From Macrostomum hystrix (Eukaryota > Animalia > Platyhelminthes): a DNA stretch of 64,000 nucleotides. The notes beneath the pieces were generated by a model. That model worked only from the letters and a program-made list of their open reading frames with translations. It did no database searches and had not been told where the DNA came from. Positions 7,743-45,660 of this stretch are shown piece by piece. Made by a program: the position numbers and the translations under genes. Numbering within the stretch: the first letter of the stretch is position 1; every line of letters begins with the position of its first letter. Location: NCBI GenBank assembly GCA_950097015.1, contig CATNEN010000039.1, positions 3,906,001-3,970,000 on the forward strand. Reading direction: 5' to 3'.

Positions 7743-8894
7743 ATTGGCTTGTTAGCCTTGTCGCGCCAGGCAATGGAGCAAAGCTAGCGAAGCAACGCAA
7801 AGCAATGCTGCAAAACAATGCGAACTAGATTGAAGCAGCAGACAGAATAAGCTAGTTTTCCTGCACGAATTCTCTATCTTATGCGCTAGCTAAACTGCTG
7901 AACTTTCGTAAAACTTGGTAAGGAAAGAACAACAGCGATCTGCGGCAACGGAAAGGCAAGCGAGAATCGGGAGGGGGCTCAGCCAAGAGAGTTTGAGAAG
8001 CAAAGATGCGCCAATTGTTTTTCCTTAGTTGCGCAGAGCAGGGAGAGAGAGAAGAACTGTAGTGTCGACTTCAGGGCAATGGGTTTGTGCGAACTCTGCG
8101 CGGACAGGCCCAAGTAGGTGAAGAAAGCTTGACTTGGCTGCTTTCGCTATTATAGAGGAGGAGGAGGAGAAAAATGGGCGCGCAAAACTAACTAGACAGC
8201 TAAGACGTGCACTGCAGCCTGGCCAATCAGAGAGAGCCAGCCCCCGTCCCCATCCAGGGCGACAGCCGCATCATTACACTGGGCCTGCGCACACGCGAAA
8301 TTCATGCAGTGGAGCTAGCAGGTAAATTATAGAACACTTTGCCCTTCAACTATTCAATAGAACTATCACAGCCAACAAAATATTGTGGGTACTTGAGTAC
8401 TTTTGCCTGCACAGGTTTAGACCGCAAGATTACATAGCTTTCTATTCTCATCTGCACTAACAGCAGCAACTAAAACCCCACCCTGTTTGGTTAATTTCAG
8501 ACAATGATAGTGTCATTGTATAGACTTTCAGCTGCCCAAGCCCCAGCCGCACTTGTCAGTTGGAGGACTTCAAGTGAGTTTATTGAGCACAAAATAATTT
8601 CAATTAACAGCTGATTGGCCATTGTTAAAGAAATAAATCACGTTGATTTAACATTTTCACTATATAGACAATGTATTTTTAATTATCATACTACAAAAAA
8701 GATGTGCTCACATAATAATTAGAAGAAAAAATATAACTTTTTATAAATTAAAGTAGGTTTTAATCAATAAGTTATTAGTTTTCCTAAGAAAAACACACAA
8801 CGTTATCATATGGCAATAGCCTTGCATAATCCATTGAAGAAAGAAAACTAAACTAAAAAATGAAGGTTTTCAAACATGTCAAAATTTTTCAATC

Positions 8895-10010
8895 TGAAGG
8901 GATAATATTTAAACCTGAAGGGATCATATTTAAACCTGAAGGGATTATATTTAAAGCTGAAGGGATCATATTTAAACCTGAAGGGATTATATTTAAACCT
9001 GAAGGGATTATATTTAAACCTGAAGGGATTATATTTAAACCTGAAGGGATTATATTTAAACCTGAAGGGATCATATTTAAACCTGAAGGGATCATATTTA
9101 AACCTGAAGGGATCATATTTAAACCTGAAGGGATCATATTTATACCTGAAGGGATTATATTTAAACCTGAAGGGATTATATTTAAACCTGAAGGGATTAT
9201 ATTTAAACCTGAAGGGATTATATTTAAACCTGAAGGGATCATATTTAAACCTGAAGGGATTATATTTAAACCTGAAGGGATTATATTTAAACCTGAAGGG
9301 ATCATATTTAAACCTGAAGGGATCATATTTAAACCTGAAGGGATCATATTTATACCTGAAGGGATTATATTTAAACCTGAAGGGATTATATTTAAACCTG
9401 AAGGGATTATATTTAAACCTGAAGGGATTATATTTAAACCTGAAGGGATTATATTTAAACCTGAAGGGATTATATTTAAACCTGAAGGGATTATATTTAA
9501 ACCTGAAGGGATCATATTTAAACCTGAAGGGATTATATTTAAACCTGAAGGGATTATATTTAAACCTGAAGGGATCATATTTATACCTGAAGGGATTATA
9601 TTTAAACCTGAAGGGATTATATTTAAACCTGAAGGGATTATATTTAAAACTGAAGGGATTATATTTAAACCTGAAGGGATCATATTTAAACCTGAAGGGA
9701 TTATATTTAAACCTGAAGGGATCATATTTAAACCTGAAGGGATTATATTTAAACCTGAAGGGATCATATTTAAACCTGAAGGGATTATATTTAAACCTGA
9801 AGGGATTATATTTAAACCTGAAGGGATCATATTTATACCTGAAGGGATTATATTTAAACCTGAAGGGATTATATTTAAACCTGAAGGGATTATATTTAAA
9901 CCTGAAGGGATTATATTTAAACCTGAAGGGATCATATTTAAACCTGAAGGGATTATATTTAAACCTGAAGGGATCATATTTAAACCTGAAGGGATTATAT
10001 TTAAACCTGA
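8895..10010. repeat. 21-bp minisatellite (AAACCTGAAGGGATTATATTT)n
   Basis: Direct periodicity; produces the spurious KPEGIIF ORF. Confidence 0.95.
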
Positions 10011-10049
10011 AAGAGTGAATAAAACAGTTTTCTTACTGTGGTGGGGCAG

Positions 10050-11790
10050 CTACAATTGAACAGCATCCTTGAGTAGCATGGCATTCACACTGCTAACAAG
10101 CCAGCCTAGGTCTCTGTATTCGCTGCCATCGGGCAGTCGGATGCTGTCCGAGCCGCGCGGTAAAATGATAAAATTTCGCCGCAATTCCAGATTCCAACCG
10201 AAGCCGTTCTGCAGCACCTCCGGCATGCGCGGCTGCTGACGAGTCAGCTGGATGACCGTCAGTAGCAACTCTTCGGCTTTGGGCTTATGAAGGGAGCCTA
10301 GCATGTTGACTCGGGCCTGCACTTGCACGGCAGCGATGCCGCTCTTTAGATTGAAGAATTCTGTAGGTGGGAACACCGGCTTAGCGACCAGCGCCTGCCG
10401 AGTGGTGGGTGGGTGGGTCGGCTTCTGAATCGAGGCTGGATGATCAATTAGAAACTGAGTTGAAGCTGGATGACCAATTAGAAACTGAGTTGAGGTTGGA
10501 TGACCAATTAGAAACTGAGTTGCGCTTGGATGACCAATTAGAAACAGGGTTGCGCTTGGATGACCAATTAGAAACAGGGTTGAGGCTAGATGACCAATTA
10601 GAAACAGGGCTGAGGCTATTTGACCAATTAGAAACAGGGTTGAGGCTGGATGACCAATTAGAAACAGGGTTGAGGCTGGATGACCAATTAGAAACAGGGT
10701 TGAGGCTGGATGACCAATTAGAAACAGGGTTGAGGCTAGATGACCAATTAGAAACAGGGTTGAGGCTAGATGACCAATTAGAAAAGTGAGTTGAGGTTGG
10801 ATGACTAATTAGAAACTGAGTTGAGGTTGGATGACCAATTAGAAACTGAGTTGCGCTTAGATGACCAATTAGAAACTGAGTTGAGGTTGGATGGCCAATT
10901 AGAAACTGAGTTGAGGTTGGATGGCCAATTAGAAACTGAGTTGAGGTTGGATGGCCAATTAGAAACTGAGTTGAGGTTGGATGGCCAATTAGAAACTGAG
11001 TTGAGGTTGGATGGCCAATTAGAAACTGAGTTGAGGTTAGATGACCAATTAGAAACTGAGTTGAGGTTGGATGACCAATTAGAAACTGAGTTGAGGTTGG
11101 ATGACCAATGAGAAACAGAGTTGAGGTTTGATGGCCAAATTGAAACTTAATTGAGGCTCAATGAACTTGATGATCAATGCAAAGGAGCTTATAGCATTAG
11201 AATTCTGATGGAGAGTTCGAACCCCAGACCCATTCTACGGACTGAAATGCTGTACACAATAACTGAAGACGCTTTACAAAAAAAAATAAGCAACTGTTTG
11301 CTAGAGTGCAAACCTCAATGCTGGACACAATTAGGCTGCCGGTCATGCGACTCAGGATGTCCCTCTGCTCGTCGCTCATTTGACTATAATGATCTCTGGC
11401 CACAGCCAGGCAGTCCGGCGTCAGGAGGCCGCTGAGGGACTCCGCATCTGGAGAAGCCAGGCCGTCAACAATTACTGGCAGCAGGCTGCGGCAAGCGTCA
11501 ACAAAGCCGCGAGTTGTAAGCTGCTCATCCTGACTGATTGATCTCAAATAGGCCAGCGTCAGCCAGTTGCCGATATTGCGAAATGGATTTCCAGTGGAGC
11601 GAATGAGAGGATTGCGATTTAGACGGAGAATCGGAAGGCCAGGTCCAGGGCGATCCTGAGCCGATGACTGCTGCTCCTGAGCTTGAGAATTGGCTGCATT
11701 ATCGTTATCCGTAGCACTGCTACAGCCACGGTGCAAGCCTGTGAGTTGTTGTATCGGAACCAAGCGGCAACGGTTGCTGCAGCAGCGCAA
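10050..11790 (-). CDS. MAIP1: MAIP1-like (m-AAA protease-interacting protein 1, Tim44-like fold); exons ~11790-11314 and 10394-10050; start codon not located
   Basis: NPFRNIGNWLTLAYLRS..FVDACRSLLPVIV..LSGLLTPDCL and C-terminal LELRRNF..WLVSSVN resemble MAIP1; the phase-0 intron joins in frame. Confidence 0.65.
10430..11150. repeat. 30-bp minisatellite in the MAIP1-like intron
   Basis: Unit TTGAGGTTGGATGACCAATTAGAAACTGAG. Confidence 0.93.
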
Positions 11791-17300: not shown

Positions 17301-20300
17301 AAACCACTGAGAATTGAGGAAGCTACCTGGCAAAATGATGCGGAAAATGCTTATTTTAGCCGAAGGCTGTCAGCTCCGCCGGCCGCAGCAGGTCTCCCGT
17401 GGTGAGCCTGGCTGGCGGTAGAAAAGCCATCAGCCTGAATGAACTCCGACAAGGCGAGACTTTGGTGCAACTTTTCGATCCGGGTGAGTGAGGCGCCAAA
17501 TTAGAGCACTCGAGTTAGTCGTTTCGACGGAAACTCAGTTCCCTCAAAACAAGTTCATAAAGCCTAGTCAAGTTCATTAAGTCAAGTGGCATTAGTCAAG
17601 TTCATGTTCGGCAAACATTCGTGTTAAAAGAATGTGTGCAGTAGCATTTATTATAGAGAGAGAGAGAGAGTGGCATTAGTCACAGATGCGAAGAGAGTGG
17701 CATTAGTCACAGATGCGAAGGGAGTGGCATTAGTCACAGATGCGAAGAGAGTGGCATTAGTCACAGATGCGAAGAGAGTGGCATTAGTCACAGATGCGAA
17801 GGGAGTGGCATTAGTCACAGATGCGAAGAGAGTGGCATTAGTCACAGATGCGAAGAGAGTGGCATTAGTCACAGGTGCGAAGAGAGTGGCATTAGTCACA
17901 GATGCGAAGAGAGTGGCATTAGTCACAGATGCGAAGAGAGTGGCATTAGTCACAGATGCGAAGGGAGTGGCATTAGTCACAGATGCGAAGAGAGTGGCAT
18001 TAGTCACAGATGCGAAGAGAGTGGCATTAGTCACAGATGCGAAGGGAGTGGCATTAGTCACAGATGCGAAGAGAGTGGCATTAGTCACAGATGCGAAGAG
18101 AGTGGCATTAGTCACAGGTGCGAAGAGAGTGGCATTAGTCACAGATGCGAAGGGAGTGGCATTAGTCACAGATGCGAAGAGAGTGGCATTAGTCACAGAT
18201 GCGAAGAGAGTGGCATTAGTCACAGGTGCGAAGAGAGTGGCATTAGTCACAGATGCGAAGGGAGTGGCATTAGTCACAGATGCGAAGAGAGTGGCATTAG
18301 TCACAGATGCGAAGGGAGTGGCATTAGTCACAGATGCGAAGAGAGTGGCATTAGTCACAGATGCGAAGAGAGTGGCATTAGTCACAGATGCGAAGAGAGT
18401 GGCATTAGTCACAGGTGCGAAGAGAGTGGCATTAGTCACAGATGCGAAGAGAGTGGCATTAGTCACAGATGCGAAGAGAGTGGCATTAGTCACAGATGCG
18501 AAGAGAGTGGCATTAGTCACAGATGCGAAGAGAGTGGCATTAGTCACAGATGCGAAGAGAGTGGCATTAGTCACAGATGCGAAGAGAGTGGCATTAGTCA
18601 CAGATGCGAAGGGAGTGGCATTAGTCACAGATGCGAAGAGAGTGGCATTAGTCACAGAGTGGCATTAGTCACAGGTGTAACAAGAGCGGCATTAGTCACA
18701 CGAGTGAAGAGAGTGTTAAATAAAACGATAGCCAATTCTCTAAACGTGACCAGAGACGCACAAGATCAGCTCCCTGAAGGTGCCAGTCGTGAAGGACAAG
18801 CGAAAGCGCTCCAGGTCCCAATCGCCAGCCGTCTCGCTGACCGTTTCAGTCGACAGCCTGGGCAGTGATGACGAAGCTGAGCAGAATAAAACTGCATCGG
18901 TACTTGCTGTCATAATTTCTAACCCGAAATTTCACCCCCGGCTTCATCGCAGTTGAGCCGAATTCCAAGAAATCACCGTAGATTTTTGTTTCAAACAAAT
19001 CTCATTAACAATAGTTTGTGGGTAACGAAGCAGTAATGATTTGCGCAGTGTGCGGTGGCGATAAACAATGCTAATTGCCAGTCGGAAACTCAAGATTGCT
19101 TTGCTGCTTATAGAATCATTTAAAAGATTCGGTTTGAGAACGCTGCTCGATTGATGGAAAACCAATTTTATAACTTCACTGAATAATTGCCTATGTATAC
19201 GAGCGTAGATTTAAAAAAACCATACTTTCAAACAAATTTTTATGCTGTGCAGTGCGTAAAATCTTTCATCTGAAGTTCATGATTGCAAGTTATGATTTTC
19301 GCTTTTATATGCCAACCTTCGTTCTGTTTGTGCTGATATTGCTGATATTGTGCTGATATTGTGCTGATAGCAATATCTTGGGTAGAGATTAATGTGTTTG
19401 TTAAGTGTTACAGTTAATAATGAAGTGGCTCGGTATCAAGGGGTGACTGGGGTAGAGAATGAGGTGGCTCGGTTATCAAGGGGTGACTGGGAGTAGAGAA
19501 TGAGGTGGCTCGGTTATCAAGGGGTGACTGGGGGTAGAGAATGAGGAAGCTCTAAATCAAGGGGTGACTGGTTGTAGAGAATGAGGTAGCTCTAAATCAA
19601 GGGGTGACTGGATGTAGAGAATGAGGTGGCTCTAAATCAAGGGTTGACTGCGGGTAGAGAATGAGGTGGCTCGGTTATCAAGGGGTGACTGGAGGTAGAG
19701 AATGAGGTGGCTCTAAATCAAGGGGTGACTGGGGGTAGAGAATGAGGTGGCTCGATATCAAGGGGTGACTGGGGGTAGAGAATGAGGTGGCTCTAAATCA
19801 AGGGGTGACTGGGGGTAGAGAATGAGGTGGCTCGGTTATCAAGGGGTGACTGGAGGTAGAGAATGAGGTGGCTCGGTGTCTTAAATTATCTCTCCCCTTT
19901 CAATTGCCGCCATCCAGAGAGCGGAGCCCCCGCCATTGCGTAAGTCCTTAGCCGCCGTGCCGGAAGCTCCAACGTCGTCGCATCCAGCGGCTGTTGCGCC
20001 TAAAAAGGCGACACCAATGAACTCCCAGCCGGCGCCGACAAAAGCGCCAGCCGCTGCTGCGGCGGCCAGCGGGAACGAGTCAGATTCGGACTGGAGCAAT
20101 TCGCAGAGCGCCGCTGCTCCGGAGTCTGGGGCGAAAATTAACCTCAAATTGGCACTGGAACAACGAATGGCAGCGAAGACAGCAACAGCCGGGCGGGGTG
20201 ACAATGGTCAGGACAATGCTCCCGACGATGATGACGACGACGATGATGATGATGACAACACTGTGGCATCGGATTTTCCTCCGACAACGGCACCTACGCC

Positions 20301-28782: not shown

Positions 28783-29454
28783 TCATGACACAGTCCTGGC
28801 ACTCAGGTAATCCACACAGAGCTGCTTAAAGCGGCCAAGCTCAGTGGTGTAGTCCACGCTGGGGTCCTTGCCGGCCTCGTCCCAGGTGCGCATCTCAAGG
28901 TAGGCGCAGTGATCCGGCAGGCTCTCAAAGTAGTCAGCCTCCGCCGGAGTCATGGCGCCTCCCTGGTGCTCCAGGGTGACTTTGCTGGCGTCGGACAGTT
29001 GCTCTCGGTAGCCTGGCCGCCTAGCAACCAGGTAACGCTTCGCTTGTACATGATTGAGCACGAAGGCGGTAATCTCTGGCGGGAATAGCAAGGACTCCAG
29101 GTAGCGGGCGCCGAGAACGTCGTGATCCACCGTGCCATAGTCTACACCGTCGGTGATCATGCGCGGCACATCCGGATCAACGCCGCTCAGGTGGTGCCCA
29201 ATGTCATGCAGCAGAGCGCCCAGCACAATGTGACTTGGCCGCTGCAGACCCTCGGCAATGAGCGCGCACTGCACCGCGTGCTGACACTTGGAAATGTCCT
29301 CGCCCAGGTAGTTGTCGCTGCCGTGCTTCTCTAACAGATGGAAAACTTCATCAACTCGAGCCTGCAGGCTCAGGTCGGCGGCTGGAGTTGAGCGAGGTGG
29401 CAGCTGGTAGCCGTTGCTGCCAGCACTTTGCTTTGTGTTTTCTGACGCTTTCAT
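28783..29454 (-). CDS. phnZ: PhnZ-like HD-domain diiron oxygenase (2-amino-1-hydroxyethylphosphonate dioxygenase family), single exon
   Basis: YLGEDISxxQHAVQCA, ALLHDIGH, DHDVLGA, HVQAKRYL, LSDASKVTLEHQGG and MRTWDEAGK are the PhnZ/TmpB signature motifs in the expected order. Confidence 0.88.
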   Translation of the reverse strand: MKASENTKQSAGSNGYQLPPRSTPAADLSLQARVDEVFHLLEKHGSDNYLGEDISKCQHAVQCALIAEGLQRPSHIVLGALLHDIGHHLSGVDPDVPRMITDGVDYGTVDHDVLGARYLESLLFPPEITAFVLNHVQAKRYLVARRPGYREQLSDASKVTLEHQGGAMTPAEADYFESLPDHCAYLEMRTWDEAGKDPSVDYTTELGRFKQLCVDYLSARTVS

Positions 29455-30839: not shown

Positions 30840-32256
30840 GTCTATGGTGAAACCGGCTTTAAACGCATTTGCTGCCCCATTCAAAATATTTTTCATCATG
30901 CATATAAAATCCGATCGCTTGTTTACCGGCCGTTTGATGGGTTTCTTCTAAGTTTGGAATCCGTTGTCTATGGTTGAAACACTACATTCCTTGCCCATTA
31001 AACCATTTAATGAGCTACTCAGGGTACTAATGATTACTAATGAAGTACTAATGAAGGATCTAATGATTTAATCGGATTTCATATAATATAATCGCAATTT
31101 ACTTCATCTTTGCCCGCCTTATTTCAGGCCGGCTTGGTTGGCCTTGGCCGAGCTCTCTCGCCCTCTTCTCCCCGTCCCTGCTTTGTGTGCCCTGAGCCGC
31201 CACCTGATTGGCTAGACGCGGGCGTTGTTTGTTAACCCTGATCCTAGACCTGCGTGGCTTTGCCCCTCCCGCCAATCAGCTCTACGTAGCTTTGCCCGTC
31301 AACCCGGCCAGCCCGTACAACCCTACCCCATGCGTGCTGTGGGCTTGAATTTGGCACACCGCCTCCCCTGTCTGCTCCACTCCCCCAGGTAGCTGCCCTG
31401 TTTTCAGTGATTATCCGCAGCTTACTTAATGGTACTGTAGGCTCGTAAATTGGTACTTCGTCTATACATGCTGCATTTATAGCCTTCAAGGCATCATAGA
31501 GAATAAAAGTTAATAATAATAATAATTTATCACACCTGTCCCAACCGGGCCAGATGTACAGCCGACAGCATGCGAATTGCTATTCGCACGAACTCACTTA
31601 GAGAAATTTAATTCAGCGTACGAACATGGGACAAAAGGCACTGCGTCGAAATCTGATTGCATATTTGGAGACAATTACTTAATCGATACAGAACCTAAGC
31701 TGTATGCCATAAGGGCGAGCTTCCAAGGGGGGGGAGTCTTGCCCAGTCTGGTTAGCCAGATCGATAAGGGAACTTCCATGGTGAAATACCGAAGGTAAGA
31801 CAAGTTGTTTGTGTGACAGAAAAGCAGTACGATTAAATCTACTATGTTCTTGTGCGTGTTGTACTGATTTGCTATCTGCTTGGTATTGAAAGTATACCTG
31901 CAGATAAATACGAGTATAAGACGCAGATCAACGAGTTAAAGTTGGATTGGAAAGACCTTCATGTAGGGTGACTGGTCTTCAAAACGGGGGTGGGTGGGAC
32001 ACTGAACTCGATACGTTTGTCTGCGCCGATTCAGTAGAGAATGAAATTTTCTCCTCTGCTAGCTACAGTTGTCAACTGCGAAACCGGGTGCTGCTACAAA
32101 AGTCACTGAAGCGACTATTTCGTTATCAGCAGGCGCAGAAAAAAGAAAAAACGAACTTGGCGATACGTAAGCAAGCCAAGGCACAGGCCGATGCAGAAGT
32201 GCAAAAGCAGTCAAAGAGCCAGTGGCAGTGTGATAGCATTACAAGCAGCACACGCG

Positions 32257-35200
32257 ATGCTCTCTGAAGCAGTTTCTACCGAGCGAGCAGTCAGCAGTCT
32301 CAAAGAGGTGTACCAGCAAGCCTGCTCACAGGTCGAATCAGAGGTGGCCGAGCCTGAAAAGCACCAGCTGCAGCTCCTGGGCCATCGGCTGTGCGACAGT
32401 GTGGACGATGCCAAGATCAGCCGCATCCGTCGACTCTACGCTGAGTTCTCAGCCGACCCTCGGAATGCCGGACTGCAGGGCGGCTGCGGCGAGATGTGGA
32501 CCTTCAGAGATGGCGGCGACCTGGACATCAGCTTCCCCATGCAGCTGGCGCCGAGAACTCACGAGTCGCAGGTGAAGCTGCGAGATCGGGGAGAGAACGG
32601 AGAGTTCCAACTGGCTATTGAACCGAACGGGAACGAGTCTGAGCTGTGGTACCTGCGAACATTGTGGAGTTGGCGGAAGTCCTACAGCTTGCAGCTTGAT
32701 ATTGTTTATGCCTCCTTGCTTGTCTTCTTCCACATCCTGTTCATCAGCAATGGTGACTGGAAGGTTTGTTGCAGTACTCGTATAAATATTTTTTTATTCA
32801 TTATTCAATAGCAAATCAATATGAACTAAAGTACGAGTATTAAAATCACCCTCGACAGAGATGGATAACGTCAGCCATAGTGATTCCTAATGATTCAGTG
32901 ATCAGCGCCATGTTATCCAGAATGAAAACATCAGCAATCAGCATACCACGATGGCTAGATGGCATTCCAGCCTTGCCAATCCTCAGAGGAATTTCATTTT
33001 TTACGAGAATTCTATCGCCAGTTACATTGCTAAGCAGAATACCAGGGGTGCGAAATCTGCTCGTGAAGCTCAATCCATCGGAGAGTCACGGCCCGGCTGA
33101 TACGGACGATGACATTCGACAGCGCTACGGCAGTATCAAAACAAAGGGCGTGGACATTGTGAGCTTCGTGCCGGCTCCGCCCGATGTCGATCAGCTGCTG
33201 GTCGAGTGGCGGTGCCGACACCAGCGCAGATTCGTCAACTCCCAGCACTTCGACCGACTCGTGCCAGCATGCGGAGATCTCGGAATGGTCATGTTCGACA
33301 CAATGCACCAGCTGTGGCGACTGTCGCTCACCGAGTTCGAGTGCCAGTGGATCAGGAACCTCCCCAAGGAGCAGGGTCTCGTGCTCAGCGTCGCGAAGCT
33401 GCTCGCCAAGGACTCTCAGCTCACCGATGGTCACCCAGTCACCAGCTACCCGATAAAGATGTCATTCTTCTGGTTCGTGTACTTTAGTGCTGACAGCGAC
33501 TGGACTCCACAGAGGGTGTGCTTGAATGCGCTGAAGGTGCTTCGCTTTCTGGAGATTTGCTTCGACAAGAAGAGCTTGCCGAACTACTTCTACCTTGACG
33601 AGAATGTTCTGTGGAAGTACAAGAAGGACGCGACGATTCTGGCTAAAATCCCAGCGACAACAAAGGCAGTGGGTCATTTTCTGAAAAATAATTTGCTCGA
33701 AGAAAAACAGGTGCAAAATAAAATCCACGGAATTGAGAAGCTGTTGGATGTCTTCTGCTCGGGAAAGTTGGAGGCATGGAATCCGTGGAGGACTGGCAAC
33801 TTCTTGGCCACACGAATATACAATTTGGAGTCGTCTCAGGAGACTCGAGTCGGCTTGGCGGCAGTGACGCACGTCTGCCTGATCGTTCTGGTTCAAGTGC
33901 TTATTGTGCCTGTAGCATTGGTGACAAGTAAAGATGCACACTTTAAGCTTCTTGCAAAACTAGGCCTTCTAGCCATTCTAGAATCGCCTATAATTTTGAT
34001 TTCGTTTGCGCTGCTAACTCTGATCCACAGACATTCTCCCTACATTGTTCTGAGTCTTGTAGAAATTCGGAAGCGCCCGCATAACACCAAGTATAAACCG
34101 TATTGTTTTTCTAAGGACGAAATGAGAGAAATATTTTTACAGGTACAAAAAGACTTGGACATTTTATTGACGAAAATTAAGGAAGAAAATAATGCCGCTT
34201 TTGCCAACCAAGCTACCTGCGCTTTAGCTAAACTCAGTGGACTGTTCTCAGCTGAGATAGAGGAAGTGAGCAGACTCAGTGACCATTCGTCTCTGATCTG
34301 TTTTAACCTGCCGGGTGAGAGCCAAATAGCTTCTCCCGTAGATGTGAAAGCATTCAGAGTGCCTGGCAGCGACCTGGTCAGCAGATTGCTCCGCATTCAC
34401 GGAGCGTGGTTCGATGTCGCCTTCACTTTCACTTGCATGGCAGCTGAAGCTATTGTCCTTCATGCGCTAGCTTGTGCTGCAGCACTATCCCAGCGCTATC
34501 ATCATTCCGTTGTCACTTGTTCTGCCTTTTCTGGCAGTGAACTATGACTATTACCGGCGAGACGATTTACGAATAAATATTCTGCGTAGCTTGGGCTCAG
34601 CGCTCTCGAAGCTGCCGATCCGACTGCCGACCCGAGTGGCGAGACTCGCCCACTGCCTGCTGGCTGGGGAAGCCCGCCTGAGAGTTCGCACCGGTCAGCC
34701 AGACGAAACTCTCGTCCTGCTCGATGCGAGGCGGCTCACCTGGAGGCTCTGCACCGACCTGCGTGAGAGACGCGCCCTCGCCTGCATGAGCGGGGGACAC
34801 AAACTGAGCTACTCCGCTGTGCTCAGTCTGGCGAGGAGGCTCGGCGTCACTCGCTCCAACTTTGAGCCGCTCCGAGTGGCATTTCACTGGACAGCGAGCC
34901 TCATGCCCGATCCGCAGCACTGGACTGTGCAAAATTCTCTCCGCAATGCACTGCTGGTGCTCGAGCTGTGCCGCAGGTGCCACCGACGAGCCAGTCTGCC
35001 GAACTTCTTCCATCCTGCAGAGAATGTGGCCCTCGTCCGACCGGAGACATTCAACGGTGTGCCAAATTGTCACGTGATTCTCGCGCACCTGCTGCAGGCA
35101 GACTCATCTGCTGCCCACCGAGCTGAGCTGGTGTCTCGGCTGCGGTGCGAGCTCGAAGCAGTCGCAGAGGAGGAGGAGGTCGCGAACGCGGCTGCGTGGG

Positions 35201-35328
35201 GCGTCGGGATGCTGGCCGCTCGAGTCATCATGCTGGCCGGTGACTTGGCCTTCCATGCTGTCTTCGCTACTGCAATATTCGCATGTGTGACTCCGTTGAT
35301 TCATATGATTAATGCGCCAAGAAGCTGA
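32257..35328 (+). CDS. cGAS-like (Mab-21/cGLR) nucleotidyltransferase with hydrophobic segments, copy A; exons 32257 (or 32191)-32763 and 32859-35328; +1 frameshift near 34470
   Basis: NTase motif LQGGCGE-x8-DLDISF; third acidic residue in GVDIVSF; Mab-21 C-lobe WRLSLTEFE..SYPIKMSFFW..W..LPNYFYLDENVL; second lobe WRLCTDLRE..LPNFFHPAENV. Confidence 0.8.
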
Positions 35329-35717
35329 AATGAGTTCAGGGTCGACTAGGCCTTGCATGTTTTTTCATGTACCAAAACGTTTCCCCGATTTCCTTGCACT
35401 TTCTTGGAAGTGAGTGCCAGACCTCATGTCTAGTAGTTTCAGTTTGCCAACGGCAAGCAAATCTGGAGTGACTTTGGAGTTTACTGATTCCTTTCGTGTT
35501 CGTAGCATTCGTGGCGTTCCCCCGTCTCATTTTTCATAGTATTTGGTCTTCAACAAAGCCACTTCTGTCTGCAATCGCAGCGTGTTTGCATACCTGCTCT
35601 TCTCCCTGGATACAAAGCCTCACACCAATGTCTTGGTTTCCTCAGCGTGGGTCTATTGTCTTGCGACAGACTTCACATTTTTAGGCCATCGGCAGTTAGT
35701 TCTTTAACCAAAACAAA

Positions 35718-37684
35718 ATGATTTGCAAAGCTGGATTATACTTTGCGATCTGCATTGTATTTTACATGATTGGTAAGATTAAGATGGCGTATAATTGATT
35801 ATTGATTGCTTGAAAGCATTCAGATTCATGAGAACCGAATTCAAATTGATTCCTACTGTATATTTGGATGTTTTGCTCATATGAGTAATAAAGCAATGTA
35901 AAACATCTGCCACTTCAGCCAGATTACTAAAAGTGGCAATATTATTTTTGTGCCTGACAAATGTTTTCCTTTGCACAAATTGCTCAAAGTTCGCTGCTGC
36001 GGTCCCGCTGCAGCCACCAGCGGCGTCAGCATTCAGTTACATCGCAGTGGCCCAGTTGAGGTGAACGAGACAGCGATCAGCTGCCTGCTGAATGAGACCG
36101 GACTGCGATCAAGCATCAGGTGTGCAGCCAGGTGTCGCGCTATCAAAACCTGCTCAGCCATCAGTGTGAACAGCATCAGCGGCCTCTGCCAGCTGCTGCT
36201 GCTTGGTGGCTTCGGCTCATCCTGCTGGAGTCGCGTTCGCCGGCTTTTCGGAGCCACGCCGCGGGATCTGGTTTGGAAGGCCACCGATTTCGACTTGCGA
36301 CTGTTCGACTCCATGCCGCTGCCTGAGCACTTTGAAGCTTCGTTCATTAGTAAGGCCTAGAAATTACTTAGACATCACTCAGACATCTGGTGACAAACTT
36401 TCGGGAATTGCAAAGAGATCAGTTTTCTATTTTGCGCACAGATGTCAGCACTGGAAGACTCGGCGCAATCCAATTCTTCACGGTGCCTCGGACCGCTTGC
36501 TACTTCATTGAAGCCCGAGGAGCGAGCGGAGGTGCTTGCGGAATTCAGAGCTCGAAATCTTACCCAGGCGGCAAAGGGGCCAGAATGAATGGCAGTTTCT
36601 TGTTGGACATCGCCGCGGAGTTGTCGGTTGTTGTTGGCCAGGCTGGCACTCAGGCCTCACTAATGGATAATGACGCAGGCGGCGGTGGCGGTGGAGGCAC
36701 TTTTGTGTACCAGACAGCGGACAGGGTTCTACTGTTGGCGGCCGGTGGAGGCGGCGGCGGCAGCGACCATGCTGTTGGTAGGAGAGTTGGTTAATAATAA
36801 TAATAATTGCAGGAGGGCTGCGGTCAATGGCACAACATTTGGTGACTCGAGACCCGCAGCCAGAGAGGAGGCATTTCTGCCCACTCCGTTCACTCCTGAG
36901 CACACTCGCACACGGATACCGTACGCAGGCAGACGCTCACACATCTGCCCTGACTTTCTCATCGTCAGGCGGTGTACACTTCACAGCCCCCAAGACCTCC
37001 GCGGCTGCTCCTCAAATGAATGTGGCTCACCGCGGAATCGAGCTCAGAGGCGCCAGAGGCAATCACGTTATCCGCTCTGCCACCGAACACCTGATCGCAC
37101 CATTCCTTGGTAACTATCTAGAACTCAAAGGTGCAGGTAGAAGCAGGACGCAAATTTGCAAAATTTGTGATTTATCTGAACGAGTGAAGAACCAACTTCC
37201 AGGTACCGATGGTCAGAGCGGCACAAGCGGCTCGGACACCGTGTCTCGGACATTCATCAACAACGCCCTGCTGGACCACGGAGGTGCTAATGGCCGGCCG
37301 GGATTCACCAACGTCTCGGGCACGCCGGCCAATTACAAGCATGGAGGTCCCGGCGCCGGCTGGCTCGGCAAGGCCCCGATGGCACGAAGGGACGCCAGGT
37401 GCGGAGAGCAGGGCGGCGGCATCGACGACGTCTGGGCAGGCGGTCTCGCTGGCACCGGCGGCGGCGACGGTGGCTTTGGTGGTGGTGGTGGCGCCTCTGA
37501 TCAAGAGGGTCCCGGAGGCGGCGGCGGCGGCTACAGCGGCGGTGCCTCTGGCGTCAGAGAGGACACAGCAGGAGGCGGCGGCGGATCCTACTGCTCCGGT
37601 CGCGGCTGCAGAGGAGCCATTGGTGGCAGCAGCGGGCAGCATGGCTCCGTGACGATCACTCTGACTGGAAGGAATTGTAGCTGA
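35718..37684 (+). CDS. Secreted PAN/Apple + ALK/LTK-type glycine-rich domain protein; exons 35718-35772, 35990-36349, 36442-36777 and 37203-37684
   Basis: Signal peptide MICKAGLYFAICIVFYMIV; CAARC..C..C PAN pattern; [57 protein letters not shown] glycine-rich signature; all three introns are phase 1 and in frame. Confidence 0.82.
36792..37087 (-). mobile_element. tRNA-derived SINE in intron 3 of the glycine-rich gene
   Basis: Reverse complement of the 3286 element, including the (TAA)n tail and GGAATCGAGCTCAG. Confidence 0.82.
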
Positions 37685-38347
37685 CTGGCCACTGAAAAAG
37701 CTGCCTGACAGTCGATTCTCATCCATACCTAACATTTCGAACGCGAATTACAAGCGAATCAAGTTATACGAATTATACGAAATTCTAGCTATGTTCGTAG
37801 AATTTTGCGAGCTAAGTTTTGGATTTTAAGACTTGGCTTTGGGTGTTTACTGCTCAGAGCTGCCGAATTCTTTTATACGCCTTATTCTCTAGTTTGATGC
37901 CATGCATCGCATTAACTCACGATGCTTTGCAATGTGTTCCTACTTTGGCTTTGAGATGGACGCTAACCATAGGCCATATAATTTATTTAATTTTCCGCAT
38001 CGCCCGGTTGTCTGCGAAAGTTCGCGTTAATTGCACTATTGCGTCAATTCGTTCTTCCATTATCTTTCTATAACAAAGTTATTTCATAGTCGTTCATCCT
38101 TTCGTAATGCTCGCTTTGAGAAAGATTCTACGTACGCGTCATGCAAACAGGGTATGCAAAAGTGATGAAAGGACGGTCTAGCTGTCTCAAACCAAACAAT
38201 AGAAGACCTGAGAGTTATTGGGTGCTTTTTTTGGTCCTAGCAGGGGTGGAGACAGGTCTTTAGAAGGCTTTGAGACCTAAATAAATGCTCTGAGAGCCTT
38301 CGGACACCGAGCGAATAGTTAGTATTTTATTTCCGCCACTGCTAGCC

Positions 38348-39757
38348 ATGGCTCACTTGGCCTACAAAGTGATCTTCTTCAAGGTGGTTTTCTACCTGGT
38401 GGAATGCATGAAAAACTACCAGCTGCTGCCGCAGGACTTCGCTGACTCGCTCTCAAGCCACCTGTCCGCGACTCTAGCCAGTTTTCTATTCATGTTGCTC
38501 ATGACCAGAATGTTCTTCTTCGGTATCATCGAGTGCCTCACGCCGCCGGAATGGCCGGAGCCCTGGGAGAAGGCAACGGAGGCCATCTGTTTCACCGACG
38601 GCACCTACGCCCTGCCGCACGGCGCTGACAACGTCACCGACGGCAGCGAGTGGCAGCACAAAATTCACCTGGGTGAGACATCAGTGCGCCCACAGTCCAA
38701 GCCTGACCACGACAGCGTCTCTTTCACTGCAGTTCCCTCTGAGCGTTTGTCTCAGTCTCAGTCTCAGTCTCAGTCTCAGTTTCTTTCTCAGTCTCAGTCA
38801 GTCTCTGTCTCTATGTCAGCCCTCTGTCTCTGTCCGTCTTCTTGTCCAGATGCCCCAAGTACAAGCGAATCATCCCACCCACCCCGGTATCCAGGCTACT
38901 ACTACTGGATTCCTTTCATCTTCATCGGCCAGGCGATCATTCTGAAGGCGCCAGATTTCTTCTGGCACTTCCTCTGCGACCTGCACCCGAAGAGGCCGAT
39001 AGAGACATTGAGGGCCTTCGCCTGCCTCATCGGAAGCCAGGAGCTGATGCAACACTCCGACAATGCCCACGTTGAGCCGGAAAATCTGGCGAAATGCACC
39101 GAGCAGCAGCGGTGGACAGACTGGCTGGCCATCCACCTGAGAAGCAACAACCGGTTGATCAACTTCGACAACTGGCACCTGTTCGCGCTGTACATGCTCT
39201 TCAAGCTGCTCCGGCTAGCAGCCCTGCTGGGCTCGCTTTTTTACCTGCAGGCCTCGTTCGGATTGGAGTCGCCGCTGTTTGGCCTTCAAATGGCCATTAA
39301 TCGTCTGCAAGGTGTGCCATGGGAGCAAGCAGACCTGTTTCCCAGGTGGGCCTACTGCGACGTGCACACCAGAATGCTGGGCAGCTGGAACACCCGAGTG
39401 ATGCAGTGCGCGCTGCCCTTGAACCTGCTGCTCGAGCAGCTACTGCTGTTCTTCTGGTTCTGGCTGACCATCTGCACCGCCTGCCTTCTGCTCTCCGCTG
39501 CCGCCTGGGGCGTCGCCATGTTACCCGCCAGACGGCGACAGTTCGGCCTCGCCTTTCTCGCCGTCGGCGGCTCCGCCAGCTTAGTCAAGACTGTGCGCGA
39601 CCGAAGGCGACTTATGAGCAATGAGGACCTGGTTGAAATACTCACGGCGGTTGACCGGGCCTTCATGCTGCGCCTTGTGGAGGAGAGGCTGGGACTGGCT
39701 CCCGCTTACTTGGCCATGGAAAAAATCGTCTACGATGTGATGCATCCTGTTGTGTGA
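38348..39757 (+). CDS. Innexin; exons 38348-38672 and 38895-39757
   Basis: IECLTP..EAICF, GYYYWIPFIFIGQA..P..FW, FPRWAYCD and QCALPLNLLLEQLLLFFWFW are innexin motifs. Confidence 0.92.
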   Translation: MAHLAYKVIFFKVVFYLVECMKNYQLLPQDFADSLSSHLSATLASFLFMLLMTRMFFFGIIECLTPPEWPEPWEKATEAICFTDGTYALPHGADNVTDGSEWQHKIHLGETSVRPQSKPDHDSVSFTAVPSERLSQSQSQSQSQFLSQSQSVSVSMSALCLCPSSCPDAPSTSESSHPPRYPGYYYWIPFIFIGQAIILKAPDFFWHFLCDLHPKRPIETLRAFACLIGSQELMQHSDNAHVEPENLAKCTEQQRWTDWLAIHLRSNNRLINFDNWHLFALYMLFKLLRLAALLGSLFYLQASFGLESPLFGLQMAINRLQGVPWEQADLFPRWAYCDVHTRMLGSWNTRVMQCALPLNLLLEQLLLFFWFWLTICTACLLLSAAAWGVAMLPARRRQFGLAFLAVGGSASLVKTVRDRRRLMSNEDLVEILTAVDRAFMLRLVEERLGLAPAYLAMEKIVYDVMHPVV

Positions 39758-39765
39758 CTTCAGCC

Positions 39766-39796
<31 letters not shown>

Positions 39797-40369
39797 ATAT
39801 TACCCTGGTCTTATTAGAAAACTGTCTTTAACTGCCTAGCTTCCTAATTGACAGCCTTCAAACCGAACGCTGAATGCAAAATATAGAGATTCGTGTTTGT
39901 ACGAGTATTATGCTAGCTACATGAGCAGAGGCCAAAAGTTTTTTTCTTCTCAAACCAAAGAAAGAGACTGGAAGTGAGCTGTTAAGTGCTGAAAGAATAA
40001 TTAATTGTGCAGCCTGAGTAATTCTGCTCGACCTTGCTCGAGTAATCTTCAAAGAACTCACAATCTATTGAAATAAGAGTTTGATTTGACACAGATATTT
40101 TAAGGATTAGAGACCTTATTATCTTTTATGCAGTGAATCATGTATCATAAAATTTATATTTTTGCGTCGCGTACAACAACATAAAGTCAAACTAGTGGGT
40201 GGTGGAGCTCTGCAAGATGGACCTGATTGGCTGAGGGAGCGCAAGGGGTAGAGAGAGAAAAAGGAGACAAAAATGGCTTAGCCAATCAACTGCCCCCCCA
40301 GAGCCGTGCAAAATGAAAAACCAAATCGGAAGTGAAACCCCAGAAAACTAGTCGGTGACTTCGCAAGAT

Positions 40370-43300
40370 CTACGCAAGATCTGCTGTCCAAAGAAAAACC
40401 ATCACCCGATTCAACAAAAAAATTAACATCAGATATGGAAAATCACACCACAGAAAGAAGGCCAAGTCACCGGCCAGCATGATGACTCGAGCGGCCAGCA
40501 TCCCGACGCCCCACGCAGCCGCGTTCGCGACCTCCTCCTCCTCTGCGACTGCTTCGAGCTCGCACCGCAGCCGAGACACCAGCTCAGCTCGGTGGGCAGC
40601 AGATGAGTCTGCCTGCAGCAGGTGCGCGAGAATCACGTGACACTTTGGCACACCGTTGAATGTCTCCGGTCGGACGAGGGCCACATTCTCTGCAGGATGG
40701 AAGAAGTTCGGCAGACTGGCTCGTCGGTGGCACCTGCGGCACAGCTCGAGCACCAGCAGTGCATTGCGGAGAGAATTTTGCACAGTCCAGTGCTGCGGAT
40801 CGGGCATGAGGCTCGCTGTCCAGTGAAATGCCACTCGGAGCGGCTCAAAGTTGGAGCGAGTGACGCCGAGCCTCCTCGCCAGACTGAGCACAGCGGAGTA
40901 GCTCAGTTTGTGTCCCCCGCTCATGCAGGCGAGGGCGCGTCTCTCACGCAGGTCGGTGCAGAGCCTCCAGGTGAGCCGCCTCGCATCGAGCAGGACGAGA
41001 GTTTCGTCTGGCTGACCGACGCGAACTCTCAGGCGGGCTTCCCCAGCCAGCAGGCAGTGGGCGAGTCTCGCCACTCGGGTCGGCAGTCGGATCGGCAGCT
41101 TCGAGAGCGTAGTGCAGACAGTCCTGAGCGTCGCAGCTCTGATGCCTGCCAGGCGGTAAATGTTGCCATTCAGAACCACTGCCGGTGTTACAAATGTTAC
41201 TGCGATAACCACAACATTTAAGTCGTCATTTATAAGCTGCGAGTCAATGGCTCTGCAAATTAAAAGTACAGACGTCATCAGGCACGCAGCAATAAGTGCA
41301 TCGTAGAAGGCACCCCAGAGCAGCATGAGGTGCTCAGTTAGAGTTTTTCGTGACGCGATATCAATGCTGACTCGAAATGAATTGTTTGAGAAATCGCCGA
41401 CGGATGCTTTCGGCCAATCAAAGGCGATGTCAGCCGATGCGCAATTATTGACGTCCTGCACGCAGTCGCCTCTCTCAATTCCGAGCTCATTGAAGGTGTT
41501 GCTCAATTCTTCGATAGAGTGTTCGTGCTCTGAAATTATTTCTCTAACGTCGCTCCGGACTTCCTGAAAAATTTCGCTTACGCAATCAACCAGTGGAGTC
41601 GAACGATGCTGGGAGTCGTAGAGACTCTTCAGCTTCTCCACAGAGCTCAGCAGGACATTGGGGACTTCTGTACAGAAAAAGCGCGCGAACAGAGGCAAAA
41701 ATGCCGTTGCTGAACTTTTGAGAAACATTGCGTACATGTAGCTTATGCTTGTGTCCCGACTCGTTGAAGCTATTCGCCAGATTATGTACAACAACTCCGC
41801 CACTGAAATTAGAGCTATGTGAACCACAGAAGCTGCCCACGCCGCGCGATTCCATTCGGCAGTTTCCGCAGACAGAAGGCGAGCCGATAAGAAGCTTGTT
41901 GCCGGAAGGTAATTCCATGCAGACAGCTTACCACTGCAGAACTTCGCCAGGAGAACTTCCATTCCTGCTATGTTTCCAATGACATTGCCGACCGAGACAT
42001 CATTTCTATCAATCAGACTCGTCAGCGAGATTGACGTTTTCGGAATTTTAACCAGAATCGTCGCGTCCTTCTTGTACTTCCACAGAACATTCTCGTCAAG
42101 GTAGAAGTAGTTCGGCAAGCTCTTCTTCTCGAAGCAAATCTCCAGAAAGCGAAGCACCTTCAGCGCATTCAAGCACACCCTCTGCGGAGTCCAGTCGCTG
42201 TCAGCACTAAAGTACACGAACCAGAAAAATGACATCTTGATCGGGTAGCTGGTGACTGGGTGACCATCGGTGAGCTGAGAGTCCTTGGCGAGCAGCTTCG
42301 CGACGCTGAGCACGAGACCCTGCTCCTTGGGGAGGTTCCTGATCCACTGGCACTCGAACTCGGTGAGCGACAGTCGCCACAGCTGGTGCATTGTGTCGAA
42401 CATGACCATTCCGAGATCTCCGCATGCTGGCACGAGTCGGTCGAAGTGCTGGGAGTTGACGAATCTGCTCTGGTGTCGGCACCGCCACTCGACCAGCAGC
42501 TGCTCGACATCGGGCGGAGCCGGCACGAAGGTCACAATGTCCACGCCTCGAATGCGCACTTTTTCTTTTAAATTTATCGCTACGAATTCGTCAGTGTCAG
42601 CTGGTCCATGTCTGGTCGAAGGGACAGTTTGCGTTAACATGTTGGCACTTGTGAATGACATTTTATTTCTTATTCTTGTTAAAAGAGTTGCTACCCTTCT
42701 TGTGAGACAATTGTCGTGCGCGTTTACATACACGCTTGCAGCAATGACTAGCGCAGCCGAAACTCCTCGCTGAAATCGTAATTGACAAGAGAATTTTATG
42801 CATGACAGTTACTTGTTGTTTCGCCTTTTTGATGAACCAGAAAGAAGACGTGCAGGTAGCTACTTACCTTCCAATCAGCGAAATGTCTCCAGAGAAAGTA
42901 TTCCACCGCCGCATGGACGCAGCACAACATAATATTGAACACTATCGCAAGAAAATACTTTTGAATCCGCAGCCGTTTCCAGGTGGCCCGCAGGTACCAC
43001 AGCTCAGACTCGTTCCCGTTCGGTTCAATAGCCAGTTGGAACTCTCCGTTCTCTCCCCGATCTCGCAGCTTCACCTGCGACTCGTGAGTTCTCGGCGCCA
43101 GCTGCATGGGGAAGCTGATGTCCAGGTCGCCGCCATCTCTGAAGGTCCACATCTCGCCGCAGCCGCCCTGCAGTCCGGCATTCCGAGGGTCGGCTGAGAA
43201 CTCAGCGTAGAGTCGACGGATGCGGCTGATCTTGGCATCGTCCACACTGTCGCACAGCCGATGGCCCAGGAGCTGCAGCTGGTGCTTTTCAGGCTCGGCC

Positions 43301-43389
43301 ACCTCTGATTCGACCTGTGAGCAGGCTTGCTGGTACACCTCTTTGAGACTGCTGACTGCTCGCTCGGTAGAAACTGCTTCAGAGAGCAT
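40370..43389 (-). CDS. cGAS-like (Mab-21/cGLR) protein with hydrophobic segments, copy B, intact (~973 aa); exons 43389-42868 and 42769-40370
   Basis: Same motifs as copy A in one continuous frame after a phase-0 intron at DWK; a further upstream exon is possible. Confidence 0.83.
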
Positions 43390-45660
43390 CGCGTGTGCAT
43401 GGCCTAAATGGGGCTACTCATCCGATTGGTATTAATTCTGCTTAATAAACTGCGGGCGCTTTTTATGTAAACTCAAACTTGAAAATAATTGAAAGAAAGC
43501 TTTATCAGTTTTTCCAGGAGCATCATAAAACTTCGAGCTGGCAGTTTGTTAAGATTTATTCAATTCAACACGCTTTTAACTCAGTTGAGATCTGAGCTCT
43601 GATAAGATCGACCGGCCCTGCGCCGAACTTCAAAAGATTTCGGCCATTTCTAGCGCTAAAAAATAATCCAGCGCTGTGACGTAAATTTATTTGCATCTTT
43701 CCATCATATTCCATGTGTATAGTGCCTCGATGCACGCAGAATCTGTTTGGAATTCGATCCGCCCGGAAGCTGTTAAATGTACAATGTATTGCATCAGCAT
43801 CGATTGTTACAGACTGATATGCCCTCTACTGCATGTTTTCTTATATTTTACATGTAAATGAGTTGAGTAATCTGATTTCGTGAAAGAGAAACTATATTAC
43901 TTAAGCTTACCGAAACTAAAAATTACTATGAGCGTACTAACTAGAAATAATTTAACGGATGGATATATTAATGAAAGAATGAGTTAGGTAAAAACCTGAA
44001 ATTTGAATTATAAAAGTTTCATTCATATAATTTTCCGCTTAAAAACTTAACAGGCAATGTTGCTCAAAAACTACTCTAAAAATAGTGAAACGACGATAGC
44101 ATGCAACAATGCCTTTTAGTGGACCATATTTCTAGTAATTAGCATTGGCACTCGTTATTTACTCGTGACGTGTTATTCATTTTCGCGTTATTTGCACGGA
44201 ACTGTGCATTAAGTGTGCATTATGCTTCTGTATGTTAGTTAGAATCATCTAAGCAACTTGTAGTTTATTTCTAATCATCGTCACGTCACTAGATCTCTAC
44301 GCGTCTGCCTTATAATTCTAGGCCTATGGCTATTTCTACTATGTAGTCTTTTAGAGATCTGGTTATGACGGCATGCAAATAACGAGTAACATTAGCATTC
44401 GGTATCAGCAGCATTGATGTCATACCAATGCGAAAGATAAAATTCGAATACTATTAAGAGTTATATTATGAATCTTGCAACTGCTAAATCAGTTTGTTAC
44501 GAAGCCTAATAGAACTTATGGAATATATATTTGTTTAAATAAAATGTTGCGGCACATTAAATATTTAATTTGTCGGTCAGGTGGTCATTATTATTTAAAA
44601 TGGTTATCGTGTGCTGCTGTGGACCTGCTTGAGAGCCTGCTGCTTGAGAACCAGCCTGCTTGAGACTGTTCCGAGTGTAATCGTTCGTATTTTGCATTCA
44701 GGATTTTTTTGTTTTCCTCTAGTTATTTTAGGCTTTACTTTGGGGTATTCTTGCTCACAAATTTTGTGTACAAATGTTACTTTTGACTTGTATGAAGTCT
44801 TCTAATCGCAATTGAAAGTATATAATAGACTTGAAGTTCAAAAGTCTCGATATGTATTTAGTTCTTACGTATAAAACAAGCGCCATATTATTTTTTTACA
44901 TTTTTTGTTTTGAATTGTACTTTTTACATCCCTAACATCAAGAAGAAACTTCCGTTTTCATATAATGGTTTACTCGTTGTCTATCTAATCTCGCTCGCTA
45001 TCAAATTGTCTAATTACTAGCTATTTATTAGATTTTTTTGAAATGTTGGCTAGCTTTAGTATAAATTTATTAGAAATAATGTTTTGTACAACCATTTTTA
45101 TCGTACTTTTAACAGTAACAGTTATGACACAAGCTATCAAGAGTTCTATCAATATTAATGAGTGTTTTAGATTTTTTCTCACTTTGCTATGTACACAAAT
45201 TAAATATTTATTTTCATGTAATCAGTTCGATTTGTAATGGTAAAAGCTGTGCCAAAGTTTGTTTAACTGTTGTTAAATATTAGCTAAATTCCTAGGGATT
45301 ATATTTAAAAAATGTAACTAGCTTAGTGAAGGTGAGTTTAGATAATTTATACGAGTACATAGACATAAAATAGAATATTTTCAGAAAGAATTTTGAAAGA
45401 TTAGCAAGTGTTTGCTATACCCTAGTTTTAAATTGTCCTAAATAAATAAATTATAATAGCCATTATTTTATCAACAAAGATTTCATATTTTATATTGAAT
45501 AATTCATTAATCTTTCGTTTGCAGCCAACCACATTGGCAGCGAACTAAGGCCTAAAATCTGTTATCAGCACCCACCCCATCCCAGATCCCAATTGTTCCC
45601 CCAAACTCCCTTCCCCTGTTCCCTTTATTCCCTGTCATTCCTGCTTTCTGTCTGTCTAGC

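Follow-up and report, generated by a model that had tools for sequence, protein, structure and literature searches.

Two paralogous genes, here called A (+ strand) and B (- strand), lie in inverted orientation within positions 32191-43400 of a window of Macrostomum hystrix DNA (GenBank assembly GCA_950097015.1, contig CATNEN010000039.1, positions 3,906,001 to 3,970,000 of the forward strand; the window is this whole stretch of 64,000 nucleotides). The core and the C-lobe encoded by both genes belong to the Mab-21/cGAS-like receptor (cGLR) superfamily, and the products carry hydrophobic stretches that make association with a membrane likely. Copy A, also transcribed, is a derivative that a frameshift cuts short. 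Our tentative reading, to which we give a probability of about 0.45, is that A and B are lineage-specific Mab-21/cGLR paralogues and that B would combine paired membrane hairpins, Mab-21 parts exposed to the cytosol and a competent nucleotidyltransferase (NTase) site.

Gene models and superfamily membership

The gene models are as follows.

Gene B exon 1, 42868..43389, - strand: open reading frame (ORF) of 174 aa with donor GTAAGT, ending HFADWK; N-terminal 'spine' helix, LQGG..DLD NTase motif (aa 73-93), beta-strand region and hydrophobic segment YFLAIVFNIMLCCVHAAVEYFLW
Gene B intron 1, 42770..42867, - strand: 98 nt, GTAAGT..TTTCAG, phase 0; assigned from sequence, the homologous intron of A being confirmed by RNA
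Gene B exon 2, 40373..42769, - strand: 799 aa, acceptor TTTCAG ending at 42771-42770
Gene B exon 2, N-terminal part: short hydrophobic stretch GVSAALVIAASVYV, GPA, GVDIV (third Asp, D77), WRLS..E and SYPIK
Gene B exon 2, middle: Mab-21_C lobe (aa ~126-251), hydrophobic pair (312-330 and ~338-360), helical linker
Gene B exon 2, C-terminal part: hydrophobic pair (487-505 and 519-537), module 2 (aa ~588-700), hydrophobic pair (755-798)
Gene A exon 1, 32191..32763, + strand: 191 aa, ending NGDWK at a GTTTGT donor; identical to B from M23 to ..ELWYLR, then its own hydrophobic segment LQLDIVYASLLVFFHILFI
Gene A intron 1, 32764..32858, + strand: 95 nt, GT..AG, phase 0; confirmed by RNA
Gene A exon 2 frame, 32859..34547, + strand: 562 aa and a stop (at 34545); remainder of the insert, GPA/GVDIV core, Mab-21_C lobe, hydrophobic helices (aa 339-357 and 371-389), helical linker, hydrophobic helix (525-543), frameshift and premature stop
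Gene A frameshift site, approximately 34468..34495, + strand: within the loop that joins hydrophobic helices 5 and 6, from three-frame translation compared with B
Gene A downstream frame, 34474..35328, + strand: sixth hydrophobic helix, C-lobe repeat and C-terminal hydrophobic helices; on the same transcript as the upstream part but out of frame with it

Joined, the two exons of B give a product of 973 aa (174 and 799 aa), the length stated in the original prediction. Searches, folds and scripts used the exon 1 and exon 2 products as separate chains.

Membership of the superfamily is carried by the exon 2 product. The Pfam profile Mab-21_C (PF20266; cut-off 24.1 bits) matches B with 39.4 bits (7e-10) and A with 29.5 bits (8.6e-7). 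The Mab-21 NTase profile PF03281 gave no match with either exon product, each searched separately; the phmmer matches that carry PF03281 align over the GPA..VDxV..WRxS region of exon 2. An exhaustive phmmer search of 1.84 billion representatives returned seven matches, five of which are canonical proteins with Mab-21 and Mab-21_C domains. Among the matches, P0001, a metagenomic fragment of 217 aa, is 43% identical and is the only close relative found outside the genome; two metagenome scans for it gave no match. P0003 is a repetitive protein and was regarded as spurious. Searches for homologous proteins with B exon 2 and with exon 1 found none. In the PDB sequence search, exon 1 had no match and exon 2 matched cGLR1 alone, weakly (E 0.14).

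In an alignment of 33 sequences, G55 and P56 (GPA), R132, S134 and E139 (WRLS..E), and Y175 and K178 (SYPIK) occupy near-invariant columns, and the third Asp, D77 (GVDIV), is kept in at least 90% of the sequences. The nucleotide-contacting WRxS and SYxxK positions are among those retained in module 1, the first of the two C-lobe-bearing parts of the product. With the same number of sequences, an AlphaFold2 (AF2) model of exon 2 residues 1-270 reached a predicted local distance difference test score (pLDDT) of 88-94 over the C-lobe. Foldseek, given this model, ranked only cGAS, MiD51 and MB21D2 entries at the top (E 3e-3 to 9e-3). VIA-align over model residues 126-251 gave Z scores of 12.3 for MB21D2, 11.8 for cGAS, 11.3 for Cv-cGLR1, 10.9 for MAB21L1 and 10.7 for MiD51 (rmsd 2.2-3.9 Å across 108-121 residues); these values are so alike that the fold cannot separate the subfamilies.

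We infer that exon 1 is the N-lobe from its motif, from a paralogue and from a split-chain model. In both copies, exon 1 contains LQGGCGEMWTFRDGGDLDISF, of the form LQGG-x11-DLD, and GVDIV follows in exon 2, so that module 1 keeps the three acidic positions of the motif, in the right order (DLD in exon 1, D77 in exon 2). When exon 1 was shuffled with its composition held constant, the strict pattern h.G[GS]x9-13[DE]h[DE]h.h arose in 0.08% of the shuffles and a loose pattern in 2.3%. BLASTP aligns exon 1 with exon 1 of a soluble paralogue of the same genome, L006 (E 2e-4), up to LQGSLAELWSF; after its intron L006 continues ..GSDLDLV, and its exon 2 matches exon 2 of A and B too. When the exon 1 product and exon 2 residues 1-270 were folded as split chains with ESMFold2, the pair scored 0.76, the best control reaching 0.07 (partner pLDDT at least 51; at least 28% of contacts recurring between runs). 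The mark of this tool is reached by 51 of 78 solved complexes and by 2 of 108 mismatched pairs. The confident part of the predicted interface sets exon 1 residues 8-61 against C-lobe residues 144-224, where the spine helix lies in cGAS; the model therewith predicts a spine helix at the N-terminus that bridges to the C-lobe. MAFFT, given exon 1 together with full-length cGLRs, misplaced it onto the C-lobe, and that alignment was set aside.

Module 2 is an internal repeat, about 112 aa long, of module 1 aa 118-228 (E 4e-11, 29% identity). It is a C-lobe devoid of the G[GS]..DxD motif, and its SYxxK residues are lost; it is a C-lobe repeat only and not a second enzyme.

The original prediction had read LQGGCGEMWTFRDGGDLDISF, then GVDIV and a Mab-21 C-lobe in both genes, and had recognised an NTase triad. 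The motifs are where it had put them, the first in exon 1 and the others in exon 2; the acidic positions are retained, at a chance level of 0.08-2.3% in shuffles; and the C-lobe agrees with the assignment both by profile, above the Mab-21_C cut-off in the two copies, and by structure, the AF2 model matching MB21D2, cGAS, Cv-cGLR1, MAB21L1 and MiD51 (Z 10.7-12.3). Its description of A and B as a pair of enzymes was overstated, A being frameshifted and module 2 being no second NTase.

Shared blocks, hydrophobic segments and transcripts

As DNA, A and B can be aligned in three blocks.

Shared block 1 (N-lobe), A 32248-32657 (+) and B 43398-42989 (-): 410 bp, 100% identity
Shared block 2 (core and C-lobe), A 33147-33649 (+) and B 42547-42045 (-): 503 bp, 98.4% identity
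Shared block 3 (module 2), A 34601-35253 (+) and B 41109-40457 (-): 653 bp, 99.5% identity

Outside the blocks, in the hydrophobic insert, in the membrane/linker block and in the tail, A and B cannot be aligned as DNA; at the protein level they are 28-45% identical there where the stretches are longer and about 15% in the short tail at the C-terminus. Within the shared blocks, 7 of 10 differing codons are non-synonymous. An assembly artefact as the source of this mosaic is ruled out by separate RNA contigs that cross A-type and B-type block borders. Block-wise gene conversion between old inverted paralogues is its simplest reading.

The products carry 7 to 8 hydrophobic stretches, which are paired. 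The first insert starts right after the canonical 'YL..' helix behind the N-lobe strands and ends before the GPA strand, borders that were read against the soluble paralogue L006 and the canonical homologue P0007. It contains one stretch of 19-23 residues, with a Kyte-Doolittle hydropathy over 19-residue windows (KD19) of 2.04 in A and 1.87 in B, and a shorter second stretch after the intron (GVSAALVIAASVYV in B); basic residues flank it on both outer sides. After lobe 1, the segments of A reach KD19 2.7 and 2.33 with respective Hessa-type sums of 0.4 and 0.7, and those of B reach KD19 2.0-2.1. Altogether, five or six segments have KD19 2.0-2.7, the best Hessa-type sums being 0.4-2.6. B is hydrophilic over its first 140 residues and has its first hydrophobic window at aa 145-163, and a single N-terminal transmembrane anchor was not found there by hydropathy. 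Because the stretches are paired, the soluble parts would all face the same side of a membrane. Across the second variable block, the hydropathy profiles of A and B correlate with r = 0.63 at 28% identity, a value reached by none of 207 circular shifts; the conservation of hydropathy at such a low identity argues that hydrophobicity is under constraint.

Transcription was followed in four small public libraries (X2-X5), whose exon-only coverage and spliced innexin intron are the behaviour of RNA. Between the first two shared blocks, an RNA contig has 394 letters, compared with 489 in the genomic sequence of A, which confirms the 95-nt intron. As these 95 nt are all that splicing takes out of A between DLD and the third Asp, the hydrophobic insert is present in the mRNA, and its origin as intronic read-through is thereby ruled out. 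Between the second and third shared blocks, an RNA contig of 1845 nt has 951 letters, the genomic length of A, so that the variable block with its hydrophobic helices is unspliced. The hydrophobic stretches are therefore exonic and stand at the positions at which they had been predicted. RNA contigs also run upstream of 32248 with A-specific letters.

B is transcribed as well, as shown by B-specific RNA contigs at 40327-40602, 40823-41255, 42240-42608 and 42923-43124, which cross four block borders. Its transcription is weaker than that of A in these runs, and its coverage leaves out the B intron and 41256-42044. At 41019-41020, a contig of run X3 that extends into B-specific sequence (40823-41254) shows G and T, the letters of the A type; these correspond either to polymorphism or ongoing conversion, or to a chimeric contig across an identical stretch.

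The genomic length of the RNA contig means that the frameshift of A is also in the mRNA. As transcribed, A encodes 753 aa and ends before module 2. On paper, 40 combinations of GT..AG introns could repair the frame; a good consensus is lacking in every one of them, the RNA contig shows no splicing at this place, and this repair was rejected.

Relatives in the genome and neighbouring genes

In the 220-Mb genome, only these two copies and the distant L006 were found. Besides A and B, three loci of the genome are of note.

L006, G000:C35:689461-692958 (G000:C35:690961): soluble cGLR-like paralogue, the closest relative of A and B in the genome
L008, G000:C24:4851713-4855261: the genome's only PF03281 match at E<=0.01, 128.7 bits
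STING_LBD-like ORF, L007 (G000:C2:9103029-9106496), L007:1000-2007, - strand: 336 aa, E 1.4e-5

L006 contains RLQGSLAELWSFQ, an intron, ..GSDLDLV, GPAVT and VDYV, and has weak Mab-21 and Mab-21_C matches. L008 is presumably the developmental Mab21 orthologue, and the other cGLR-like genes of the genome escape the PF03281 profile. From its sequence, the ORF in L007 is a candidate for a divergent STING. The phylum is held to be mostly without the STING pathway.

Between A and B lie a glycine-rich reading frame resembling the ALK/LTK glycine-rich domain and an innexin gene. The former belongs to two glycine-rich reading frames in different frames (36390-37684, +), the first of which matches the ALK/LTK domain with 29.4 bits; together they are probably one spliced gene for a secreted Gly-rich protein. 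The innexin gene (38348-39757, +; Pfam 9.3e-47) is expressed, and its SQSQSQ-rich stretch at 38672-38893 is a GT..AG intron removed in RNA contigs. Innexin/pannexin-type channels are relatives of the LRRC8 channels, which carry cGAMP in mammals; the adjacency of an innexin to cGLR-like genes may be a coincidence. The presence of an innexin, together with spliceosomal introns and the RNA data, marks the genome as that of an animal. Elsewhere in the window, a 223-aa reading frame (28786-29454, -) has an HD phosphohydrolase domain (30.1 bits). At 8860-10059 and 17634-18668, long frames are open on both strands and their translations are low-complexity and His-rich, which suggests repeats and not genes.

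Readings of the architecture and their meaning

According to Li et al. 2023 (PMC9980059), 87% of described cGLR architectures are stand-alone enzymes, and fusions are with ankyrin, TPR, death or further cGLR domains. That work names no cGLR with a transmembrane architecture, and the motifs of A and B were found in none of the proteins of its tested set, Macrostomum proteins included. In the literature, no described transmembrane cGLR was found, all matches concerning the helices of STING. Membrane-bound Mab-21 paralogues (MiD49/51, ITPRIP-like) do exist (PMC10732462). The earlier statement that no family with this layout is known thus agrees with what was found in descriptions and databases. 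The proposal of a new class survives in part: the layout is undescribed, but membrane-bound Mab-21 proteins as such were already known.

Animal cGLRs, including L006, share with A and B the Mab-21 C-lobe, the GPA / VDxV / WRxS..E / SYxxK core, the hG[GS]..DxD motif and the N-terminal spine helix, and domain fusions are known among them. In A and B, in contrast, the NTase fold is interrupted by a hydrophobic insert, a further three pairs of hydrophobic segments come after it and the second module is a C-lobe only. MiD49 and MiD51 (MIEF2/1), in the mitochondrial outer membrane, resemble the proposed layout of A and B as membrane-tethered, cytosol-facing Mab-21 NTase folds, the C-lobe model matching with Z 10.7. 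Their single anchor is N-terminal and their catalytic acidic residues are lost, whereas B has a hydrophilic N-terminus, internal and C-terminal hydrophobic segments and a retained triad; the MID51-like C-terminal profile PF21297 of Pfam had no match in the exon products. ITPRIP, ITPRIPL1, ITPRIPL2 and TMEM102, named as paralogues of the cGLR superfamily in PMC10732462, are, like A and B, members of the Mab-21 superfamily, and have membrane segments, as A and B probably do. In them, signal peptides or single-pass segments lie outside the fold, and we know of none with an insertion inside the NTase fold or with a tandem C-lobe. Tandem NTases of the OAS2/OAS3 type share with B the duplication of an NTase-family module in one polypeptide, with inactive copies. 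However, OAS proteins duplicate whole domains and are soluble, whereas B repeats just ~112 aa of the C-lobe; B does not have the two or more complete NTase domains that define an OAS2/3-like multi-cGLR.

In the reading that we prefer, B would begin with a hydrophilic N-terminal spine helix, followed by the N-lobe motif hxGG-x11-DLD. An insertion of ~45-75 aa, with one long and one short hydrophobic stretch, would follow the post-sheet helix and precede the GPA strand. After GVDIV would come the canonical Mab-21 C-lobe and two hydrophobic helix pairs around a helical linker, and the protein would end with a catalytically empty C-lobe repeat and a final hydrophobic pair. The paired stretches would form helical hairpins in an internal membrane, with all Mab-21 parts and both halves of the NTase fold on the cytosolic side; B has no signal peptide. 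We infer this insertion and topology from the pairing and hydropathy described above. The single NTase site would be competent for a nucleotide signal, catalysis by B being possible, and tethering would either confine the action of the site to certain places or link it to a cue borne by the membrane. The 98-100% identity of the soluble-domain blocks of A to those of B would most simply be maintained by gene conversion between the two inverted genes.

Several observations weigh against this reading. As regards the N-lobe, hhalign placed the motif on the GS..DxD columns (IAGSTGEGVAKPLTSDYDVIFSPS) of the cGLR profile, but with E 0.088 and a probability below 1%; Pfam gave no profile match for exon 1, a hidden Markov model of the N-lobe built from the P0007 family scored exon 1 no higher than shuffles, and the Atlas search with exon 1 had no match. 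The motif has GG instead of GS, and the split-chain model is devoid of confident beta-sheet contacts. To our knowledge, MAB21L1 retains such acidic residues with no reported activity, and the triad alone is no proof of activity. AF2 of the whole exon 2 product reached a pLDDT of 43.6, showed no confident packing and was discarded. The distribution is narrow, with two copies, one of which, A, is frameshifted. As for a cognate receptor, the best STING_LBD match in the genome (G000:C2:9104529-9104996) scores 25-25.6 bits, where the cut-off is 27. In the insert inside the NTase fold, the second arm is just 14 residues long. For the hydrophobic segment of this insert, the Hessa-type sum is +3.4 to +3.6, and the KD19 of 1.87-2.04 compares with maxima of up to 1.95 in soluble Mab-21 homologues. 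The segment is thus only marginally membrane-like, and the claim of hydrophobic segments holds strongly after lobe 1 and marginally inside the fold.

Some of these points are shared by the best surviving alternative, which is possible though less probable than the reading above: a membrane-anchored, non-catalytic Mab-21 scaffold or adaptor, similar to MiD49/MiD51 or ITPRIP, whose fold would bind a nucleotide or a partner. An N-lobe too divergent for any profile, the GG of the motif, a large insertion that splits the NTase fold, a duplicated C-lobe that has lost the SYxxK residues and the unclear STING match all speak for it; MiD51 is among the best structural matches, and the membrane-bound paralogues cited above are precedents. 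This interpretation is opposed by the retention in module 1 of the three acidic positions together with WRxS and SYxxK, by the loss of the catalytic acidic residues in MiD49/51, unlike in B, and by the lack in B of an N-terminal anchor and of a match to the MID51-like C-terminal profile.

A bolder version of the preferred reading, which we consider unlikely, would make B the first integral-membrane cGLR, an active synthase of a nucleotide second messenger in which a membrane hairpin divides the NTase fold and catalysis is thereby gated by the membrane's state; the variable hydrophobic and linker blocks would be the diversifying 'receptor' and the converted blocks the conserved 'enzyme'. The gating cue might then be damage, curvature, a lipid or a partner in the bilayer. 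The luminal cue of the original prediction is pure speculation for A and B.

Still less probable is a soluble or peripheral protein whose hydrophobic stretches do not span a membrane and are buried or oligomerisation helices, or monotopic hairpins at the surface of lipid droplets or the endoplasmic reticulum. The intra-NTase segment and several segments of B are no more hydrophobic than the top windows of soluble homologues, and AF2 packs none of them confidently; against this stand the 19-residue windows of A after lobe 1 (2.7 and 2.33, with their low Hessa-type sums), the pairing of the 7 to 8 stretches and the conservation of their positions at 28% identity. Finally, a decaying, lineage-restricted duplicate pair with no conserved function, its mosaic and inserts being by-products of rearrangement, would fit the two copies in 220 Mb with one frameshifted, the near absence of relatives elsewhere and the mostly non-synonymous codon differences of the shared blocks (7/10), but is improbable given the open 799-codon exon of B, the transcription of both copies, the hydropathy and motifs conserved across an ancient divergence and the 43%-identical fragment P0001 in another sample.

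The A/B mosaic is a clean natural example of block-wise homogenised domains beside freely diverging linkers. If B is inactive, there would be two independent cases, MiD49/51 being the first, in which the cGAS fold serves as a membrane scaffold. If the integral-membrane version were true, membrane-gated catalysis would be a sensing principle undescribed for cGAS-like receptors. The usual view of cGLRs is that they sense nucleic acids as soluble proteins of the cytosol, and for most of those in invertebrates no ligand is known. A membrane-built cGLR with a hairpin in its catalytic fold would point to cues that are linked to membranes and are not nucleic acids, and would offer, in B, a concrete protein for tests.

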